Shown: piece after piece, positions 41,001 to 60,853 of the stretch
How the letters are laid out: each line of letters starts with the position of its first letter
Numbering within the stretch: position 1 is the stretch's first letter
Source: Hyphochytrium catenoides
Taxonomy: Eukaryota; Protista; Hyphochytriomycota
Assembly: GCA_900088475.1 (NCBI GenBank)
Contig: FLMG01002348.1
Span: forward strand, 1 to 64,000
Reading direction: 5' to 3'
Length of the DNA: 64,000 nucleotides
Translations under genes and position numbers: made by a program
The notes under the pieces: model-generated
What the model saw: only the letters and a program-made list of their open reading frames with translations
The model's database searches: none
Told to the model about the DNA's origin: nothing

Positions 41001-44000
41001 GTCCTCCTCAACCTTCTCCGCGTCCACGCCTGCTCAACAGGCACAGATGGAAAATAAAGTTTAGTTAGGGAGGGATAAACGCGCAACATAAGGAGCCAAC
41101 GCGACCAGAATTGGCAGTACTTCTGTCAAGCTTCTCACTAAGAACTAACTCCGAAGTACATACCAAAGAATGAAGCAATCATCTTTGCAATAAAGAGTCC
41201 CCAGAGTGGGAAAACTGCGCCATTCATAAGAGCGCCCACCAATCCTAGACCCAGGAAGGGAAAGTTGTTGCTCCCAAGGGAGTAAAGCCGTTTGGCAGGG
41301 ACCTTGTATAGCCTAGTAGAGTAGAGAGAAGAGCAGCTGTTTGTAAGCACCTTTGGGATGTCCTTCTACATTCCAACTTCATAGATAAACGTCTCTTGGA
41401 AGGTGCGATCTCTCTCTTTGTCCTGAGGATACGTAACCTCTCCTCCGCCCTCCTCCCTTCCGGCCGAGTCCTTGTTCTTCGCGGTTACACTTACTCTTCC
41501 TTCTTTGCTCCTGTCTCTAAATCCAGCGTAATCCCGGCATTTGACTGAAAGACAGAGGTACTTGAAGAGACAAGTGTTGCGTCCCTTCCGGGATACAAAG
41601 TTGAACTTCCTGCTTCTCTGCGCTCATCCAATAGCACCTGGGAACCCCAGAGGCTACTCCGCCGGTGACACTCGTCGTCTTCATCTTTCACCTCTTCTTT
41701 CTGTCTATCAACCAGACGGCGATAGTGGCCATCTTCTATCGCTAAGAGATCTTCGTGCTTGCCTTCCTCAACCAGTCTTCCGGCCTCAAAGACAGCGATC
41801 TTATTGGCATATCGAATGGTTGATAGACGATGAGCGATAATAATAGTTGTCCGCTTATGCTTCTCCAGAAGAGAATCTAACGAGGCCTGGACAATCCGCT
41901 CGCTTTCATTATCTGTTTATAGAAGCAAGATCGCCAGGGTATGAGGCCATGAGAATATAGAGGAGGAAAGTGAATGGACTTAGATAACGCCACGTCCTCT
42001 GACTTTCACAGGAGAGTGGACTGTCAGAGATATAACGAGGGAGATAACCAACACGCCCAAAGAAAACTTGAGGTACAAGACCTCTGCCTACCGAGTGCAG
42101 AAGTAGCTTCATCCAGCACCAAAATGGCTGGGTTCTTGATAATGGCACGAGCTATCGCAACTCGCTGGCCATTAAAACAAATGAAGGAAGGAGGAGGTGA
42201 TATTTAGTCTCGTCGTCTGAACACAACCTTTTGGTCCTATGCCTGACCTGCTTCTGCCCTCCTGAGAGCTGGATGCCCTTCTCGCCAACTTCAGTCTCAA
42301 AGCGCTTGGGGAAAGACTGAATAAACTCATAGGCGTTCGCAAGTTTGGCTGGAGAAACAAGGAGACCATGATGATGCAGGGCAGAAAAGAAAGTGTCAGA
42401 GGTGCAATAGCCATGCTCTCGAAATTCACTAGGCGCAAACGTAAGCGAATGATAGTGGATTAGCGCGCAGAAGCCCCAAGACGACAGCAGTCTCGTATGA
42501 GAACATAGGAGCGCTTGAATTCGTGAATCCGGGACAGTAATGTCTTTACCTGCACTCTCTACCTCAGCCATCGTGCAGCCAGGCTTTCCATTCGCAATAT
42601 TCTCCGCAATAGTGCCACCGAAGAGCACCGGCTCCTGACTCACAAGCCCTAAATGGTGCCAATAGAAGGTCAAAACAGAAAATAATCCAAAGTGGTGGTA
42701 GAGAGAAATGCGGTGTGAGTTTACATGACTAACTTTCAAAACGTCAAACCAGAGGCAGAAAAGAAAGAGATACTGACCAATTTGCTGTCTGAGCCATCGA
42801 ACATTAAGCGTCCTGAGATCCATCCCATCAAGGTACACCGCTCCTTCTTGAGGATCATAGAATCTTTCCAGCAGCGCTACAGCCGTGCTCTTTCCACTTC
42901 CACTATGGCCCACAAGAGCCACCGTCTCTCCTGCCCCAACCTTGAGGTTGTAGCCCCTGCAAACAGGGGCCTGAGGGCGGGTAGGATAGGCGAACGTGAC
43001 ATTTCGGAACTCCACCTGCAACGTGACATGGTAACGAAAGTGAGATAGCCACATCGTCAGTAAAACTCAGAGAAAGAAAGTCGACTGAGCAGGTCAAGAC
43101 ATACATGACCCTGGACAGGATGGAATGGCTGGGAACAGGACGACCCCTACCCACACACAGCTACATCGAGTGTGTCCTACCTCGCCTCTGACAGTTGTCA
43201 GTTTATTCCCTTCGTCGCTCATAGCATCGATATGTGGCGTGCGGTCCAGCAGGTCAAATATCGGCGCTGCCGCCGCACCAGCCCCCGCTACTGCCATGAA
43301 GGACGGCGCGGCCTGGCCAAGCGCGATGGAAGCCAGAATCACAGAAAAGAAAACACCGACGACCACACCACCTGAAGCAGTTGTACGTGTGAGGCCAAGA
43401 AGAGGTAGGACAAGAAGGTCACAAAGCTTAACAGTACCCTGCTAACGACACTAGACTCAGAAGAAAAAAGTGCCAATAAAGAGCTATAGCGCATAGACAA
43501 GGAGGTGGAGTGTCAGACCTGTGACGCAGGAGCTGTCTGATGTGCCTATGAAGCATCCCCTACGAATGTCATCAGCCACCACCTGGCCGCCATACCACAT
43601 GCCTAATGCATAGGCTGCAAATGAGAAAAAGAAGAACAAGCCGTTGGCGATCCCAAGAGCCACACTCTTCTTAATTCCTCCTCTTTCGGCGTCCTTTAGG
43701 TTCTCCGCATAGCTAAACGGGAAGAGGCAACGTTAAAGAGATAAATCAAAGAAGTGAAGCCGTAAATGGAGGAGGAGAACGCTACTGATAGGGATAGCAT
43801 ATGGAAAATGAACAAAGGTTACCTACCGTTGCACTTCTCTCTTCTGTCCGCCAAACGCGACCACAGTTCGGATGGAAGACAGCACCTCCGAGGCCACGGC
43901 CGCGGCCCGTGCATAAGCTTCCTGGGTCATGCTCTGGGCTTTCCCCGATGACCTAGAGAAAGAGACGCGAACGGATATAGAAGAGGGAAACAGGCGATGT

Positions 44001-45561
44001 CAACTAAGCAGAGCGGACAGATTAAATGAGGCAAGTGAAGGGGGATTTGAAGGACGAGTGAAGTGACCCCTTATCATTGTCGCCTCCTGGGTCCCATAGG
44101 TCTTCCCATATTGGTTGACCGGCAGTCTTTAGCATACCTCACAAGATTCCATGCAGTGAAGCCCAGAACTGGCAGCACGGAAATGATAACGAGTGTCAAT
44201 TCCCAGCTTTTAGAGAACCCCAGGGCATAGCCTCCAATAAACATCGAGGAATGCTGGATACCGTCGGCAAACTTACGACCAATGCCCTCCTATGTAAGGC
44301 CACAAGTTAGATGTCAGACATAGACACATGCCCTCTAAGTAAACCCAAGCATCTCCGCCACGCAGGATCATACTTTGACTCAAAGGTCATCAGCAAGTAT
44401 GCGGGTAGAAACGACACAAACAAACCAACAATCTTGACAGTATTGCTACCAACGGTTGACGAGAGACTAAGGCAAGGTCACAGCGAACTGTGAAACAGAA
44501 AGACAAAGAAGCTAGGGATAGCGTAATGTGTCCTAAGAAGCAGCAAAACGACAACGAGAGAGTAAGTCAACCTGAATGGCCGTTGTCTTTTCTACGACTC
44601 CGCTGACAAGGTCTCCAGAGTTCTTGAAGTCAAACCAGCCGATTTCCTGCCTCAAGATGGCAGCTACATAGTGCTTTCTCAGCTTCCTGGTCTGTCTCTC
44701 CGCAGTGGTGTTCCAGCAAAACGCTTGTAGAAAACCGGAAACGAGGGCGACCGCTGCAAAGATGCAGAGATATTGCACCTGCTTGAGCACCTCGTCCATA
44801 AACTAGCAACAACAAGAGAAGTGTGAGATGGTGGCAAGTGAGATCTTGCGCAGTGTCAGGCTAGTAGAGACATTCTAAAGAGAGAGACACTGAGTAACAC
44901 GACATCAAATCCTGAACCTAGAGACAAGTGGACTGCAGTTATTATGGAGAGGGAAGGAGGATCTGACGCGGTTCAGGAGTAAAGTGTGGATTAATCTACG
45001 CAAACGCCGAAAGGACATATACTGCAGCATGGCTCTTAAAGGTGTAGGGCGAACGTTCCAGAAAGTAGGTACAACTCCTACTTCGTCATTGGTCCCGTTA
45101 AGTGAATCAAAGAGCTGCCCAAGCACTACTGTCATCGCAGGCTGGACCAGACCCATCAGCACCGCTCCCACACTCCCCACGACCATCAGGAAGATATCAA
45201 GCTCATCTGCATAGGAGAAGATCCTAATGAAAGACGGAGTATTGGCTAGTGGATCATCCACATGGATTGCACCCTCCTCTGGAGCCCGTTCATTAGGCAT
45301 GGCAGGTTTGGCATCAGGCCTTGGGTCTCTAGTGGTGACAGACAGGTCACTCTTCCTCTCTGCCGCCTCTGTGGAAGGCCCAGATGTCTTCGGCGTCAGG
45401 GCCTGAAAGTAGGGTGCCTCAACAGGCTCTCTTGATCCCTCGGCCCCGCGCATATTCGAAGCCTCAAGGCACAAAGGTCCTGTAGCACTCGGATCCTCAC
45501 CGGGTGAGCGCGCGGCCTTTGCGCCGATGTCGGAAGCACTAGGGCTGTGAAGTTGTGACAT
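38020..45561 (-). CDS. ABCB1: Full-length ABCB1/MDR (P-glycoprotein-like) ABC transporter, TMD-NBD-TMD-NBD, multi-exon
   Basis: TMD1: [37 protein letters not shown]1: [54 protein letters not shown]2: [61 protein letters not shown]. The start ATG (MSQLHSP) is inferred. Confidence 0.95.
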
Positions 45562-46339
45562 TGTCTGATTGCATTCCTCCGCTGCCAATTTCTCAAACGT
45601 CCAGCCGTTGAGCACTCGAAGTAGCACACAAGCGCCAAGGCTGCAGAAGTACGCAGTAAGAAAGGTCAGAACGCAACTACAAGTACGGCATGGTAGAACG
45701 ACAGCGACGAAAGGCTGCTAAGCGAGACAGGACAAAGAGCGGGAGCAAAATGGAGGAGTGAGAGGCAGAGATGGAGCTGGATCGTGGGATGAACCGCTGC
45801 GCATAGGGTGTGAGCTCCAGGCAAACGGAGGCTACTAAAGATAAGAGGCATGAAGCCGAAGAAACCAACACTGCAATATACTATCAGGATTGAGGCGAGC
45901 TTCTTACGCGGAAGGACACACCGGCGGCTGTTATGTACACTGGCGAGCAGCCTAAGGTAGAGTGGTCTTAGTACTCTTAGGGCACGAAGAGAAACGAAAA
46001 ATGATGATCTGGGCTTTGGGCCTTCTCGACCTACTCTTATTAGCTCCCCTAGTGCAGCCAAGACATTGTCTCATCTACCGTCTCCCTCTCAACCCCCATC
46101 GTCTGGCGCTTCGTCAATATCGTCCATTGTGTCATCTGCATCGTTGGGCTAGGACGGGCACTTCTCACGGCTTGGGTCTGCTCCTCCCTCCGCCTGTCTC
46201 ACCGTCGACCTTACTCTTCTTGCCAGTCGACAATCCCACAACCTGTGGGCAGAAAGTCCCTTATCTAGACATTTTGGCCCTCTTCTCATGATGCCGAAAG
46301 GAGAGGATTTCTTTCGTCCTAAGATGCCGCCCAATAATC

Positions 46340-46530: not shown

Positions 46531-48750
46531 GTATCTTTTGGACGTTCTTCAGCCTTTATACCGCGTCTCCCTATCACAATGTATAATACAATATCTATAC
46601 AACAGACACAGAACTGATTGATAGTTAAACCTCCCTCGTAACGTGTGTTACGTTCTATGATAATACTGAAACTCTACTATCTCTGGCACTATCGACTATC
46701 GCAAGCTCGTATCCTCACAAAGTTGCTGAAGTCAAGGGAACGACAGCGAAGACCACCGAGACACCAAGGTAAGACAACACCAGTGCGGCAGCGGCGCTGT
46801 TGAAGCGGCAACAACGTGAGGTATCTCCTGCCCTATCTCTGAAAATGTGGGGGCTCTAGCACCTCTAGTACTTGAGGAAGCAGTCCCTAGACTTTTCTCC
46901 TTAGTGCTGGTGCCATAACAGCAACAAGTGGATCCTCCGGCTTATAGATTAAGAGGAGGAGCCACAAGAAGGTGGATGATGAAGAGAAACGAAAGAAGCA
47001 GCAGCCGATGTCATGATGGTCAAGGAAAGAAGTGGCATGGGCCGGTATGTGAATGTCCAAGCAGGAAGAAAGGTATCGAGCAATAAACTACCTCTTGGTG
47101 TAATATCTTCCTTCTAATATGGAATAAATATCTTTGTTGTGACTGTGCATCTTCTTCGTCGAGTCAGCTACCCTATTATTATTGCCTGGTTCACTACAAG
47201 TCATATATCATCATTAACCTCCCAGCCGCAAGCACTACCAGGATGAGGGAAGTTTTCTTCTGATGGTAGTGGCACAGTGCTCCTCCACCTTTTCGAAGAG
47301 GAAGGCTGGTCAGTAGAAGAACCGCATTGCCGTCTCAAAACAGAGAGAGATGAACAAGGCGTCTGGGAATCAAATCATTCTTCGTCGATGCGATTGAAAG
47401 AAATGACAAAAACGCTTGGTTTGATGATGGGCTGTTGAATGAGCAATAATTCAGAAGCACCAAAAGGAGTTGCGCTCATGCCATCCACAGATGCCTAATC
47501 ATGCCAAATAATAAATAAAGAGCGCTATTGTGTTATTAGCTGATGGGCTGGCTGGACAGCCAGGCCGGGAAGGGGAGGGGGATGACAAATAAAAACGTCG
47601 GACAAGAAATAGTGGCGAAGTGCGTCCAGCCGACGGGTAAAGAAGAAGTGCAATGGGAGAGGAGGAGCGCTGGGGAACCACGAGGCCAGAGACGCGTTGA
47701 TAGTAGCACGCATTAAACATTGAAGTGTCAAATGAAGTGACTAGCCGGGAGTCCTGGACAACGTCATCAACGGGCAGATCAACAAGCAGAACGCTGGACA
47801 ACAACCCAAGATGCGTTTGACATACAACTGACGATGATTTCAGAGAAGTAAGAGCACCACCCATCCAGGAGCTCTCTCTCCTCCTCCAAACAACATAGTT
47901 GAGAAACATTCTATTTTCTTAGGAGGAACAAATGAAGAAATATGTCACAGTCATACAAGGAAGAAGACGATAACGAGGGTAAAGATTAGATACCAACAAT
48001 CCGACGCGACGGTCAGTAGCAGCTCCCCCCAGTTCAAGCGCAAGAAGGAGAAGAAGGAGGAAGGCTAGTGAACCGACTGATGTATCATGTATGAAGGAAT
48101 ATGGGAATACAGGCTTATCAGAGACAGGAATAAATAACTAATGTCAATTTTGGGCTATTTTAGCTTTTGTTGGTCATTCAACCCTATAATCTCATAATAG
48201 TTCTTTTCACCGTCTCTGCTGATCCTTCTTAGCAACACCATCATCCACCATTCCTTGTCTTTATCACTAAAGAACTACAAGGACGATGATGAGGGCTTTT
48301 ATAGCATTTTCCTTAGCTGATGACTACCGCCGCGAGGATCCGAAGTCCAAGAAGAAGCTCCTATTGCTATACTTATATAGTCGTCTATGCTTGTGTTGTT
48401 GTTGTTTATCTGGTGATGGGAGAATTTATATGATTTATAGGAAAGCAAGCAGGCAGGCTTTGCTAGCTGCTTCTTGCCATTCATCATCTTAGACTTTTTG
48501 TCATCACCTGTACTCACCAATAGAGTCATCCTCATAAGCTCAAACAACGGGACGGCAATGGACGCGGCGGGTGGGGTGGTGATGCGGGGCAGCCTACTAG
48601 TTCTTCCTAGGCCTGGTATTTCTGTGTGCATCATCATTATCTTCTTCAAGGAGCAAAGCTTGCTATGGAACTCCTGGGGAAGCTCTGCACAGCGTCCTGC
48701 TAAGCTGGAAGACTTCAATAATTTTGGCAAATCGCATCGCTCCCAGCAAT

Positions 48751-48824
48751 GGCCTGTTGGCCCAATTGGATAAGGCGCCTGACTACGGATCAGGAGATTC
48801 TGGGTTCAAGTCCCAGGCGGGTCA
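48751..48824 (+). tRNA. tRNA-Arg, anticodon ACG, intronless
   Basis: GGCCTGT/GCGGGTC acceptor stem, D-arm TGGCCCAATTGGATAAGGC (A box), anticodon arm CCTGA-CTACGGA-TCAGG, T-arm CTGGG-TTCAAGT-CCCAG (B box). A T-run terminator follows immediately and no CCA is encoded. Confidence 0.95.
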
Positions 48825-49443
48825 AAAATTTTTCGTCCTTTAGTAAGCTCCACTACAACATTATTACTACAAATGCTAGGTGCTCGAAACGCCACGATCA
48901 TTTGTTGTACTGTAGACACAGGAGGAGAAATGATTGTCTCTTAGGGGTGGTTGTGGACACCAAGATCTTCAGGGATGAGGAATGGGCAAGGTTCTGACTC
49001 CCAACGCTATCTATGGGCGGACTTCTCTTTTCTTTCAACCGCCAGCGCCACCCAGCAGTCTTCCTTGATGAGGTGAGACTTCATGGCGTCCAAAGAGGAA
49101 GCAAAGCTCTGCCTACTATCTAGTAGATGGGCGGGCATAGGATCACCTCCTCCTCTATGGCAGCGGCTCGTAGTGGTGGTGGGCAGTGGGCAGTAAGTGG
49201 CCATGTATTCCATGAGGGTCTCGCTGCTCCGCCGCCTCCCAAGTCCATCTCTGCATCACAATCTCCCTGGTCACATCCAACAGAGGAGGCTTGATGTCAT
49301 ACGGTGCGGTGCGGCCTTTCCCTCCTCTGACTTGCATCAAAGACAACTTTTCCTGACAGCCTCCACGCAAGTTCCCTAGCCAAGATAATAGTTCCCTAGC
49401 AGGATTACTTAAAGACCGGAGAAGAGACATTCTACTTTGAAGT

Positions 49444-52400
49444 ATGAGTGGCTCGGTTGCCGCTGGCGGCCCACATGACCTTGGTGGCTTGGTGCCACCA
49501 TCTCCAGTTAAGAATAGTGACGAGGCTTTCCCTAATCTGCAGGATCCCGCGGTAGCGAGCCAAGTGAAGGACAAGCCTGAGAAGCACTGGGAAATGCAAG
49601 TGAACGCCCTGCTTGTCGTGCTTTCATGCAAGAAGCCAAAGCCTCTTCTCACCACTGATGAGCTTCGAAGAGGTGAATCTTCTATTTCTTATTTGCTCTT
49701 GCTCTTCCTATTGAATAAGCCTCTGCGATAAGGCTTCTTACTAGCTTCCTAGTCACTTTCCTCGCTTTCGTCTCTCTATGTTCCTCTCCGTTCTTCCTGA
49801 CTACTCTGCCTCGCTTCTGTCTCTTGAGTTCGTAATATGACGCTCGTCTACATTGTTTACCTCTCTGTGGCACCTTATTGCCCCGTCCTCAGGCGTCGAA
49901 GCCTTGCAAGAGAAGGTGTACCAGTCTTGGGGTTATTATGACCGATGGGCTGCGTCTATGACGAACATCCTTATTGAGAGAGGAATCATCTCCTTAAAAG
50001 AAATGGAGGATGAGCTATCAGGGGACGAAGCAAGAGAAGGGGCTTCTTTCTCTTCCGACCCCAAGTTTAAGACCGGAAACAGAGTGCAAGTGAAGAAGGA
50101 AGACACCCGCTGCCGATGGAGAAAGCCTCATCTTCGAACTCCAGGGTAACTGTGGCACCAATACGCATTCCGAGCCTGCCAACTGCCTATACTAAAGACT
50201 TTTTGGTCTTTGCTATCGTCCCTCCTTCTCCGTAGGTATATCTTTGGGTGCAGTGGTACGATAGAACGGTACTGTGGTTGCTTCCCTGACCCCTACTACG
50301 AGGCCTTCAGGGACTCGGCTCCTCCGCAGCATCTCTACCGTGTTCGCTTTCTTCAAAGGGATCTTTGGCCGGAGTATGAAAGAGGGAACGATGACACAGT
50401 GGACGTGGAAGTGTATGAGGGATGGCTGAGAGCAGAAGACGTTGAAAGGACGTTTGAGGAAGGAGGTGAAGATGTCGAATACCGCCGTGCACCAACTGAC
50501 GAATGCCAAGAAGGTAGGGAACTTGCTAAATTCGCTGTCAGGTCCCGTTGTCATCTGCTTTCCGCGCCGCGCTATCATGTGATCAACTTACAGCGCCTGG
50601 CCTGCCTGCCTAGGTCATTTAGCGATATTCTCATGCTGACTAACATGCCATCCTCGAGTCATCTGCCCTTGTAGCGAATATTTGTTTCTGCCTTTCGTTT
50701 CTAAATATTATCATTTCTCTTACCGTCAACCTTGACACAGTCTTCTCCTAACGCACGTCTCCTTCGGCCATGGAATTGTGTAGACGGTTTGGACCATCAC
50801 TCGCATCACCACCATGCGGATGGCGACCACGGGCACGTGCACGAAGCAAGGGCTACAGTGGAGCAAACCGCCATCGAGAAGGAAGGGGAGCCAACAGCGG
50901 GACAGGTACTGATATTACAGCTATAGTTACACGAAGTTGACTAGAGTGGGAGGGAGGAACGTCTGTTCCATTGTGAATGTTCACCCGTAGCCTGTCGAAG
51001 CCAAAATAGTGTCTTTGGTCTTTCCTATCTTCTAACCGGGAGGCCCTTAGGCTGTCGGTGAGGCTCTCCTTCGTCTCTTGGAGAGAAAGGGGATAGTCCG
51101 CAGGGACGAGATCAATCAAGTCATAGCAAAGACGGAGGAAGCTCACCATAAATTGCTTGGTGTACGTGGACTATATTGATTACTATGCGTCCTGCACTCC
51201 TCCATTGCTTCTGATACGAACTGGAACCCCACCTCTGTCGTGTCCTCCTCTTTCTTAGGCTCGTTTGGTTGCACGGGCCTGGACGGATAGCGAGTTCAAG
51301 GATAGGCTGCTCGCAGATGCTAGCAAAGCGGCAGAGGAGCTTGGCATCAAGACTAGCAATCCTAACGCTCCAACCGTGCTTACTGTCGTAGAAGACACGC
51401 CCCAGGTATGGTCTTTCGAAATGGCTCTGACGATTTTTTTTGTCACTACTTTCTCCTCCTCTGCCTAGCCCATGCGGCAATGGGATTATACAATGGCATT
51501 GGGGAATTCTTGGCCATTTCGTGTACGTTTCATTGCTGCTCACCACACCCTTGCTTACTGTTGTAAGTTACATGCCCGACGGTGGTAGGCCTTGGGCTTG
51601 TAAAGCTCTTGATGATGGCCCTCTCACAAGCTGTCCTCCTCTTCTCTCGCCTTCGGTAGGTCCACAACGTGATTGTCTGTACTCTATGCAGCTGCTACCC
51701 ATCTTCCATCCTTGGATTCTCCCCATCGTGGTACAAGAGCAGGTACATTCGCCACCATCACAGATTGTGGGGTGTAGGTGGGAGAGAGAAAGTGAGGAGG
51801 AAGGGAGACGATAGATTAATGGTGGGAAAGCTGGTGGAAATGAAAGAGACCAAGCGGCACAGTGGTGAGAAAATCAGAGCAAACAGGAGGCTTCCAGGGT
51901 ATGGTCCGCTCCATTGCCTGCGACAAGAATCTCCAACACTGCTGGCATACGAAAGACAGAGGCATTGAGCGCAGACAGAGAACAGGAGGTTGAGATATTT
52001 TTACTTCCCGGTGAAGAAAATTAAAGCATTGTGTTCTCCAGAACCTATAGGTCCAGGGTGGTAAGGGAGCCACGTACTGTGCTGGCGGAGGTAAGAATAA
52101 CCTTCAGTCTCCTTCTTATAGCAGATAATCCTCTTCTCACTTTTGCCTGCAATCGTCCGACAATTTCACGCGTGCCTCCTTCAGTTTGGGACACACCTGC
52201 CTCCAACAGTGAAAATTCAAGTCCACGACTCCACTGCTGACAACAGGTGAGCGAGACTGCCTAACCATTCTGACGGCTCCTCTCTGGCTATCTGACACCC
52301 TCAACCTTCTTGTCTTTTCTCTATCCCTTCATTTTTTGTCTTTGCCGTCCTATGGACTCAACATAATGCGTCAATCTAGGTATATGGTGCTGCCTTTACG

Positions 52401-52539
52401 TCCAGAGGGCACGGAGACTTGGACCGAAGAAGCTTTGCTGAAACTCGTAACGAGAGATTCAATGATTGGCGTCACCCTTCCCAAGGTCATGACGTATGAG
52501 GGTACGATAGGTCCCAAAAAAACGTCTAATCAAAGTTGA
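49444..52539 (+). CDS. Fused beta-alpha cobalt-type nitrile hydratase (single chain, 497 aa, 10 exons)
   Basis: Exons 49444-49672, 49893-50145, 50236-50513, 50784-50905, 51051-51161, 51259-51405, 51660-51742, 52042-52090, 52185-52246 and 52380-52539 sum to 1494 nt in frame. Beta motifs: [48 protein letters not shown]. Alpha motifs: [77 protein letters not shown]. Confidence 0.96.
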
Positions 52540-57450: not shown

Positions 57451-59661
57451 TCATGAGCCTGACCTGCTCTGCGTCAGAAGGTGATAGAGAGATGCCGTCA
57501 GTCCTTGTTTCTCTCCAATACTTCGGTTGGCAACGTCTGCCATAGGGGCCAATGTGGAAAGCAGGTCGGGAGTTAAAGCTAGAAACAACTGCCTGATTGT
57601 CTGCTGCACTAACAGACAAGCGTACAGCTCTCCTTCTTCAATGTACAAGCCCAGTAGCTCCTCCAAATAAGAGACAAAGTGCAGGAAGAAGTTTTCCTTC
57701 ACGATAGGAAATAGCAGATGTCCGCAACAGGGCCACGGGATCTCTTTAAGAAGATTCGTGAGGCAGAAGAGAGAAAGTATACTCCCAACTTTCTCTTTCC
57801 CTCCTCTCTTCAACGGCGCTCTGCTGTTACGCGACGGCGGTACCCATAAAAGGGAGAGAAGAAGATCTAGGGATTGTCGAAGCAGACGGGCTTCCTCCTC
57901 GCGTTGGAGGCCTCCTTCCGGCCACAGAAAGCGCACTCTTCTCGAGAAAAGGAGGAGAAAGCGGTAATAGCCTACCAAGAGCCTGTTGAAAACTCTAGGA
58001 GGTGAGAGCTCCATATACTCTCTAAAGTCAACAAGAAGGGAAGAGAGAGGAAGAGCAATAGAAGCATCAGGGGCGAGAAGTCCACCGCCCTCTTCCACCC
58101 CATCGAGCAGAGCCTGTACGTTGAGCTTCTCCGAGATCACGAATGACGCCTTTTCTACTTTTCTTTTTCTCTTTCCTACAGTCTCTCCCGCCCAGCCATA
58201 AGCCCATTCTTCGCTTCCTATCTCAGCGACAAGGTGTTCAAGAAACCTCGCAGAACACCTTGTAAATGCCTCCACCATAGGGTCTACATCCACAAAAGCC
58301 CGAGCTAAGTCAGGGAAAAGATCTGAATGTATAGGAGGTTGAGAGCGATCAGCATCCTGTCGCTTTTTTTCCAAAGAAAGCGAAGAATGTAGTTGGCCAA
58401 AGCAGAGAATCTGGAGATCCGTAGGCAAGAGGAGGTTATCGCGATAATCAACCGCAGAAAGCGCTCCTTCAGAGTAAAGATTGCGGCAAACTCTCTCAAA
58501 CAAAATCGGGCATTCCGAGCGGTACCAGCACATCAATCTCTTTATGTTCCACCACTCCTGTTCCCTCATCCTTTCCTGTTCATCTCTTCCACTTTGTGCT
58601 ATTGAACTTAGGAGAGAGAGTAGCCGGGCTGTTACTCGGGCTTCCAAGTCATCCTGGTGTCGTCGGTCCCCTCCTGGGTTAAGTGAGACTGCTGCCAGCG
58701 CTTCCATTTCGTCTTGTAGAGGAACCGGAGGGCCTGGGGAGAAGGGAACAGGAGAAAGAGCTCCTTCTGCTCTATCTAACAGAAGACGAACGTTCCACTC
58801 TCTCAGCTTTGCTCGGGCCCAGCCTTTGGCTTCCCCAGAAGCTGTCCCTGCTGTTAACTCCTTCAGGAGCCAGAGTACCTGATCGCGCCAGATATGATGA
58901 AGGATGAGCGGCTTCGACCTTTTCTCTCGCTCTCTTCTTGAACCTCTCTTCTCTATGAGCCTTCCCCACTTTGCTATCTCTATTTCATCTTTGAGGTCTC
59001 TCCCAGTCTCTACAGGTGGTAGAACGGCCTTCAGCATGTACTCTAGGATCAGCTCAAAGGGGCGAGGAGAGGCATGATAACCTTCAACAGTGTGAAGAAG
59101 GAAGTTAACAAAAACTGACCCGTTCAATCGCAGTTTCTCTTCGTCTTCTCGCTTCTTCTCCTTTTCTTTCTCTTCGCCTTCTTCCCTATCGTCTGTCATT
59201 CCGCCTTCTGATGGCGAGAGGAGAAGGGCACACAAAACCAGCTTTTGGCGAGGACAGAGGCCTAAAACTTGGTTCCCCACGGTATCAGCTTCAGAGAGGA
59301 GGAGAGGAAGAGGGGAGTAGAGAGAAAGAGAGCTAAACTCGGAAAGGAGAGAGGTCGGCAGGACAGGGAGCAGAATGGGTCTGCGTATAGGCTCCATGGA
59401 CTCAAGCTCTTCCACGACATCGGGGTCAGCAGTGCAGTGAGAAGAAAGAGGTATGAAGGACATGTCAGAGAGGGATGGAGATGAAAAAGAGGAAGAGAAT
59501 GACGCTGCTGAAGAAGAAGCTGCTGAAGAAGATGATGGAGAAGAGGCAGGTCGGCCAAACGGTAGAATGCCATGACTGCACGTGGCTACATCCATGAGAA
59601 GTTCCTGCACCAGCTGCAGATACTGCGGACTTCGCAACCCCATCCCTTGACGCTCGTCCAT
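57451..59661 (-). CDS. Hypothetical intronless protein, about 736 aa, leucine-rich and predicted mostly helical
   Basis: A 2.2-kb uninterrupted ORF. The first in-frame ATG after an upstream TGA is at 59661. No family confidently recognised. Confidence 0.7.
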   Translation of the reverse strand: MDERQGMGLRSPQYLQLVQELLMDVATCSHGILPFGRPASSPSSSSAASSSAASFSSSFSSPSLSDMSFIPLSSHCTADPDVVEELESMEPIRRPILLPVLPTSLLSEFSSLSLYSPLPLLLSEADTVGNQVLGLCPRQKLVLCALLLSPSEGGMTDDREEGEEKEKEKKREDEEKLRLNGSVFVNFLLHTVEGYHASPRPFELILEYMLKAVLPPVETGRDLKDEIEIAKWGRLIEKRGSRREREKRSKPLILHHIWRDQVLWLLKELTAGTASGEAKGWARAKLREWNVRLLLDRAEGALSPVPFSPGPPVPLQDEMEALAAVSLNPGGDRRHQDDLEARVTARLLSLLSSIAQSGRDEQERMREQEWWNIKRLMCWYRSECPILFERVCRNLYSEGALSAVDYRDNLLLPTDLQILCFGQLHSSLSLEKKRQDADRSQPPIHSDLFPDLARAFVDVDPMVEAFTRCSARFLEHLVAEIGSEEWAYGWAGETVGKRKRKVEKASFVISEKLNVQALLDGVEEGGGLLAPDASIALPLSSLLVDFREYMELSPPRVFNRLLVGYYRFLLLFSRRVRFLWPEGGLQREEEARLLRQSLDLLLSLLWVPPSRNSRAPLKRGGKEKVGSILSLFCLTNLLKEIPWPCCGHLLFPIVKENFFLHFVSYLEELLGLYIEEGELYACLLVQQTIRQLFLALTPDLLSTLAPMADVANRSIGEKQGLTASLYHLLTQSRSGS

Positions 59662-60407
59662 CTCAAAGAGTAACACCCGAGACACTCAGTAATTCTTCTC
59701 TGCGCAGCAAACGTATCAAATCCCAACGTCAGTCCTTCTTTCACCCATCCCTAAACTTTCTTTCGCTACCTCGTCAGACCCGTATGTGTCGGCTTAGACT
59801 TTTATGGTACACCAGTCCAACAACGAGAGACGCTGCCTCCATCAGCGATTGAAGTGGGCCAGGCATTAGTAGTAGCGGCAACTTCATAGCCCCGCCCTAG
59901 CACTTCAGTGTCAAGACAAGCCCAAGTCAAGTCCCCGAGAACTCTGTCTCTGCTTCTGCTAGGATTGAAGCTCCGATAACACTCGTTGAAAGCTCCACCA
60001 AAGGGCTGATGAGGTTCTGATCCTTCCTCCTGGAGGACGTCTGATTTGACTCTGTCTCGATGGCATAAATGTCTTTTTTAGCGTTTTGCACTATGTCTTA
60101 CAACAAATTCGCCCTCTCTTCCCCGTTGAACGTTCTTCTGGTCTCTTCCTTAGGAATGTGCGCTATCTCGGTACAGTCATTTAACCTGCGCGTCTCTGTC
60201 TTTACTTTGGCTCTGTCTCGAACTTGGTGGCACTCTATCTCTTCAAGTAGACTCTTCGAGAAAGTGTTTAGCTTCTTTCACTCTTCAGGATCCTGGCCGT
60301 TAGCGGTCGGGACTGTAACAAACACAATCACAGAGAAGAGGCAGACGAATCTTTTGTCTCTGTGAGCCGGCCCCGCGCCCCGCCCCATGTCTTCTCCAGT
60401 TCTTGCT

Positions 60408-60538
60408 GCTCTCTCTCTCTCTCTGTCTCGCACTCTTTCTCTTTCTCTCTCTCTCTTTCTTTCTCTCTTCCTCACTCTCTCTCTCTTCCCGGTCTCTTTC
60501 TCCTTTATTTTATTCCCCTCCGTTTCCCTCTTCCTCCT

Positions 60539-60569
<31 letters not shown>

Positions 60570-60590
60570 CTCTCTCTCTCTCTCACGCTC
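60408..60590. repeat. (CT)n microsatellite / polypyrimidine tract
   Basis: Long CT runs are directly visible between two divergently oriented genes. Confidence 0.92.
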
Positions 60591-60853
60591 TAGCTTTCAG
60601 GTCATTTCTACCTCTAGAGCACTCTGTCTTTGTAGCTGGGATGTGATGAGCGAGAGAGAAGACAGACAGAGACTTCCCACATTAACTTGATGCAGGAAGA
60701 CACAACGCAATCGATCAGCAAGTGACCAACTGGCCGACAACAAACAGGAGCAAGAGGCAAACTTATTGAACTCTTCCGCGCAAAGCGAGAGAGACAGAAG
60801 AAAAAACGAGTGACCAAGCGAGGAAAGAAAGAAGGAAGAGACAGCGGAGCACA

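Follow-up and report, generated by a model that had tools for sequence, protein, structure and literature searches.

Nitrile hydratases (NHases) with beta and alpha parts fused into one chain form a described family, reported in 2008 from Monosiga brevicollis (Foerstner, PMC2603476) and in 2012 from multiple eukaryotic supergroups, with stramenopile members already among them (Marron, PMC3323583). Intron positions in the family are reported not to be shared. According to the later study, the Co-type VCT motif is found in every eukaryotic NHase (VCT/VCS separates Co- from Fe-type enzymes), and a His-rich stretch lies between the domains of opisthokont fusions (PMC3323583). In the Monosiga enzyme this stretch is (His)17, and it is dispensable for metal insertion according to a review (PMC7193024, citing Yang 2018). 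Classical two-subunit Co-type enzymes (Pseudonocardia thermophila 1IRE, Geobacillus/Bacillus 2DPP and 1V29, Pseudomonas putida 3QXE) have separate alpha, beta and activator genes, and between the two halves of their beta subunit about 20 residues are inserted that have no counterpart in the eukaryotic type. Three-subunit bacterial Co-type NHases, such as Streptomyces canus AnhD/AnhE/AnhA (PMC7329996) and toyocamycin NHase, consist of three polypeptides with neither linker nor introns. Thiocyanate hydrolase (SCNase; Thiobacillus thioparus, 2DD4) belongs to the same superfamily and has a Co centre, with its beta part in two subunits.

The locus from Hyphochytrium catenoides is, with high confidence, a native nuclear gene for a single-chain, eukaryotic-type and Co-type NHase of 497 residues, in which a beta N-terminal domain, a beta C-terminal domain, a His-rich linker and an alpha domain follow one another in one predicted chain. 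It shares the beta-then-alpha order, the VCTLCSCY site and the possession of spliceosomal introns with the described eukaryotic fusions (PMC2603476, PMC3323583), to which the protein is 37–56% identical and with which it groups at 100% support. The interdomain His-rich stretch of opisthokont fusions is also present, in a form shorter than that of Monosiga, with 9 His in 18 residues. The H. catenoides gene differs from other members in its lineage, an ochrophyte/haptophyte group, and in its own set of nine introns. With the classical two-subunit enzymes it has the fold families, the metal motif, the beta arginines and the YY..W substrate-pocket motif in common.

The sequence was read directly and the gene model, based on homology only, was assembled by script. 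The gene lies on the + strand and runs from an ATG at 49444 to a TGA at 52537–52539, with 10 exons and 9 introns and a single open frame across all junctions. Its exons are:

49444..49672, + strand: exon 1, with the start codon, an N-terminal HDLGG motif, a WE motif and DELRR with the first conserved beta arginine (family beta HMM positions 19–54, E 4.9e-05)
49893..50145, + strand: exon 2, with the remaining beta N-terminal domain (YY..W motif) and the start of the beta C-terminal domain (Pfam NHase_beta_N, 9.7e-07)
50236..50513, + strand: exon 3, with the beta C-terminal (SH3-like) domain and the start of the linker (Pfam NHase_beta_C, 1.8e-10)
50784..50905, + strand: exon 4, with the His-rich linker and then a conserved H-x-H-E-x-R-x-x-V-E-Q leading into the alpha domain
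51051..51161, + strand: exon 5, with the first alpha-domain helices; donor GGT/GTACGT
51259..51405, + strand: exon 6, alpha domain (Pfam NHase_alpha, 4.7e-12; matches Co-type alpha chains in the PDB)
51660..51742, + strand: exon 7, with the metal site VCTLCSCYP (Pfam NHase_alpha, 3.4e-13)
52042..52090, + strand: exon 8, with a corrected acceptor AG at 52040–41 that restores a Tyr-Arg invariant in homologues
52185..52246, + strand: exon 9, alpha domain (homologue alignment and family HMM)
52380..52539, + strand: exon 10, with the C-terminal alpha domain, a 15-residue tail and the stop TGA (Pfam NHase_alpha, 5.6e-12)

All nine introns are GT-AG and U2-type, measure 90–299 bases and have pyrimidine-rich 3' ends; no U12-type donor was found among them. 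Two splice sites called for a choice. At the end of exon 5, a donor at 51159 breaks the frame and was rejected, and the donor at 51161 keeps it. The most obvious AG at the end of intron 7, at 52049–50, yields a product of 494 residues, three residues short and without the invariant Tyr-Arg. The acceptor 9 bases upstream of it, at 52040–41, restores the Tyr-Arg found invariantly in 16 fused homologues, and because only this site does so the acceptor was set there.

Both conserved beta arginines are encoded. DELRR, at the end of exon 1 (49657–49671), includes R75 (codon 49666–49668), and HLRTPG, in exon 2, carries R158 (codon 50135–50137), with intron 2 splitting the motif as HLRTPG/Y over 50129–50145 and 50236–50239 at the exon 2/3 junction. 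The CTLCSC motif is encoded at 51678–51695 and is followed by Tyr-Pro, so that VCTLCSCY occupies 51675–51698. The Pfam families NHase_beta_N, NHase_beta_C and NHase_alpha fall on separate exons and in the order of the model, NHase_alpha being recognised in exons 6, 7 and 10 (5e-12 to 3e-13). Exon 1 on its own matched neither a Pfam family nor a PDB chain, and for this reason its identity was taken from the family alignment and HMM. The initial annotation had placed the start and stop at 49444–52539 and CTLCSC at 51678–51695, and both are exact on direct reading; its intact in-frame beta-then-alpha fusion, its nine introns and its two arginine motifs (DELRR and HLRTPGY) are likewise borne out.

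A family HMM built from homologues and run over the whole 64-kb stretch of DNA analysed (the window) recovered exons 1–3 and 5–10 in order. The same search found neither a second NHase copy nor an activator-like beta fragment in the window.

Relatives were gathered by an exhaustive representative search with exon 3, chosen as the query given that no single exon reaches full-length relatives through a length-limited word search. The search returned 355 sequences, many of them fused proteins of 370–600 residues. Against fused homologues the spliced protein aligned in a single HSP over nearly its full length, with no gaps at the exon junctions; the best of them, from Ectocarpus fasciculatus, is 50% identical over residues 9–478. 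A profile search collected, at E<=1e-20, a set of 649 proteins, and many of these are annotated as nitrile hydratase already. The organisms named as sources include bdelloid rotifers, dinoflagellates, a ciliate, Physarum, Sphaeroforma, Thecamonas and Corallochytrium; green algae, diatoms, a brown alga and a pelagophyte; and labyrinthulids and a chytrid-like fungus. The initial annotation, which had placed such fusions in Monosiga and "scattered" protists, thus overrated the novelty of the gene.

Conservation was scored against 137 full-length homologues. The H. catenoides protein keeps every column that is at least 95% conserved (61/61), among them R75, R158, Y91-Y92-W95 and C387-T-L-C-S-C-Y-P394, and 106 of the 109 columns that are at least 80% conserved. 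One fused homologue, P0241, is intronless and lies at L002:3001-4455 in a gene-dense Logan contig of 11 kb, adjoining TPR and DUF1823 genes. Given that it groups with eukaryotic sequences in the tree, its probable source is an alga with a compact genome, the alternative being a prokaryotic fused form.

Two trees place the protein. Among 64 eukaryotic proteins, its sister group (92% SH-aLRT) is a clade that includes Ectocarpus, and both belong to a group with diatoms and pelagophytes. A second tree was built from concatenated beta and alpha parts of 37 eukaryotic rows and 40 bacterial rows, the latter drawn from the 80 closest bacterial loci; it was analysed as an unrooted tree of these two sets, with the classical two-subunit NHases left out as an outgroup. 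Here the 37 eukaryotic rows split from the 40 bacterial rows at 100% SH-aLRT, and H. catenoides falls in a 95%-supported group of 14 rows comprising diatoms, pelagophytes, Ectocarpus and a cluster with the haptophyte Chrysochromulina.

Intron positions were compared with those in the genomic loci of four homologues, which hold 46 introns in total: 2 in Ectocarpus, 10 in Sphaeroforma (as reported in PMC3323583), 5 in Myrmecia and about 29 in Polarella. Exactly one of the nine H. catenoides introns coincides with any of these. Intron 9 (52247–52379), a phase 2 intron within the Arg of STADNR/Y, matches intron 5 of the green alga Myrmecia bisecta (L005) in position and phase. The 9 x 46 comparisons, spread over about 1,300 aligned positions, would by chance give some 0.3 exact coincidences; one was seen. 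A single coincidence is within chance expectation, and we therefore rejected the shared position as a sign of antiquity; the reported absence of shared intron positions essentially holds.

The closest prokaryotic relatives found were three-subunit Co-type NHases. In the set of 80 bacterial loci (L007-L086) nearest to the eukaryotic alpha domain, 61 have beta split into two adjacent ORFs, in the order beta-N, beta-C, alpha that is colinear with the eukaryotic fusion (e.g. L008:1528-3052). In two of the 80 the order is beta-C, alpha, beta-N, and in eight beta is undivided. At one locus, each of the small ORFs matches one half of the NCBIfam nitrile_beta model. The H. catenoides protein is up to 58% identical to these bacteria in alpha and up to 42% in beta, and it lies across a 100%-supported branch from them.

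The window also holds other features around the gene. Upstream of the NHase, a tRNA-Arg (ACG) occupies 48750–48825 on the + strand, with about 620 bases between it and the start codon. Farther upstream, at 42152–45627 on the - strand, an ABCB-type ABC transporter with intron-split exons matches ABC_membrane and ABC_tran; no functional link between this transporter and the NHase was evident. Downstream, 57451–59685 on the - strand is an uninterrupted and uncharacterised ORF of 744 residues with low-complexity Ser/Leu/Glu stretches and without a Pfam match, and long GA/CT microsatellite-like tracts at 60278–60690 are read on both strands as ORFs of Arg-Glu and Ser-Leu repeats. The NHase coding sequence has a GC content of 0.53 and a GC3 of 0.55, compared with 0.53/0.54 for the neighbouring ABC-transporter exon and about 0.47 for introns and flanks.

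The class of enzyme was judged on the motif and on profile scores. An Fe-type nitrile hydratase would share the fold and the Cys triad, but the motif here is VCTLCSCY and not VCSLCSCT. Scores point the same way: the active-site exon 7 reached 40.6 bits against Co-type chains in the PDB and 28.2 against Fe-type chains (SCNase gamma, 36.5), and the alpha-domain profile gave 225–247 bits for Co-type alpha chains and 202–215 for Fe-type chains, with 270 bits for 4ob1_A, an engineered Co-type chain of 290 residues. The beta-domain profile, which aligns both arginine motifs and YY..W to 3qxe_B, likewise scored best with the Co-type P. putida beta chain (107 bits; Fe-type, 79–101), so that we regard an Fe-type enzyme as highly improbable and the Co-type assignment made in the initial annotation from Thr followed by CSCY as upheld. 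Whether the substrate is a general nitrile is a related question, since a member of the family could act on a non-nitrile or specialised substrate, in the manner of SCNase or a nucleoside-nitrile hydratase. The best solved match of exon 3 alone is the SCNase alpha subunit (28.9 bits versus 24.9 for classical NHase beta, a slight preference), and among bacteria the nearest relatives show the same arrangement of three genes with a divided beta as SCNase and toyocamycin NHase. Furthermore, what eukaryotic NHases act on in nature is not known (PMC3323583). The eukaryotic proteins narrowly miss the bacterial equivalog cut-offs of NCBIfam (alpha 231 versus 249.85; beta 95 versus 152), and a substrate equivalent to that of bacterial NHases therefore cannot be taken for granted. 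Whole-domain profiles of both domains nevertheless favour Co-type NHase over SCNase, which reaches 203 bits in alpha (its gamma subunit) and 43 + 40 bits in beta (two subunits), and NCBIfam scores the closest homologue at 231 bits with nitrile_alph and 183 with thiocyanate hydrolase gamma. On these scores, and on the single chain here as opposed to three separate subunits, a reading as thiocyanate hydrolase was rejected. The Monosiga family member is also said, from the 2017 work of Martinez and colleagues, to hydrate acrylonitrile, and a specialised substrate is in our judgement unlikely.

Two further explanations concern the gene itself. An alpha domain with as much as 58% identity to alpha subunits of proteobacteria could raise the suspicion of contamination by bacterial DNA or of a horizontal transfer in the very recent past, but the gene has nine spliceosomal introns and a composition equal to that of neighbouring genes, lies between intron-containing eukaryotic genes and next to a tRNA, and is nested in the eukaryotic fused group, apart from bacteria at 100% support; we give this explanation next to no weight. 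A gene that looks intact could also be silent or decaying, and pseudogenised extra NHase copies have been suspected in Emiliania (Marron et al., PMC3323583). Neutral decay would not be expected to leave an open frame over ten exons, canonical splice sites and 61/61 conserved positions, and an unexpressed gene is accordingly very unlikely; the native Co-type NHase gene is presumably transcribed. Since it groups with the fused eukaryotic proteins, matches its neighbours in composition and retains all of the family-conserved residues, the proposal of the initial annotation that the gene is long-resident, rather than a recent transfer or contamination, is supported. The trees and the composition fit vertical descent in a stramenopile-like host.

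By homology with the solved bacterial Co-type enzymes, whose mechanistic papers are listed in a review (PMC7193024), the three cysteines of CTLCSC and two backbone amides would bind a low-spin, non-corrin Co(III). Two of the cysteines would be oxidised, to sulfinate and sulfenate, and held through hydrogen bonds by R75 and R158. A nitrile substrate may then bind the metal, and attack by the sulfenate oxygen and water would yield the amide, which would be open to hydrolysis by a separate amidase. Because beta and alpha are fused, separate subunit assembly would be unneeded, and by analogy with the Monosiga enzyme and the three-subunit bacterial NHases a dedicated activator is probably unneeded as well. 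Martinez and colleagues reportedly expressed the Monosiga enzyme in 2017 as an active cobalt enzyme without an activator.

The bacterial gene order suggests a tentative origin for the fusion. The ancestor of the eukaryotic single-chain NHase, the H. catenoides protein included, may have been an operon of three genes (beta-N, beta-C and alpha) of the bacterial class that needs no activator, and not the classical two-subunit enzyme, with intron 9 perhaps a relic of the ancient fusion, although we hold this scenario to be possible rather than probable. A three-subunit Co-type NHase (ScNHase) matures without an activator (PMC7329996), which offers a plausible reason why no activator is known for eukaryotic NHases (PMC7193024). 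Descent from such an operon, if true, would explain this absence.

Within a published and widely annotated family, the H. catenoides gene is a new but ordinary member; the architecture, metal type and wide eukaryotic distribution of the family have all been reported already, and the gene opens no new question. Its presence would imply cobalt use and nitrile metabolism in H. catenoides, as the predicted enzyme suggests. The practical gain is a gene model with a corrected exon 8 acceptor, together with evidence for a native, constrained gene. The family thereby gains one more well-modelled member with mapped introns, and the protein could reasonably be considered for expression as a candidate single-chain cobalt biocatalyst that works without an activator.
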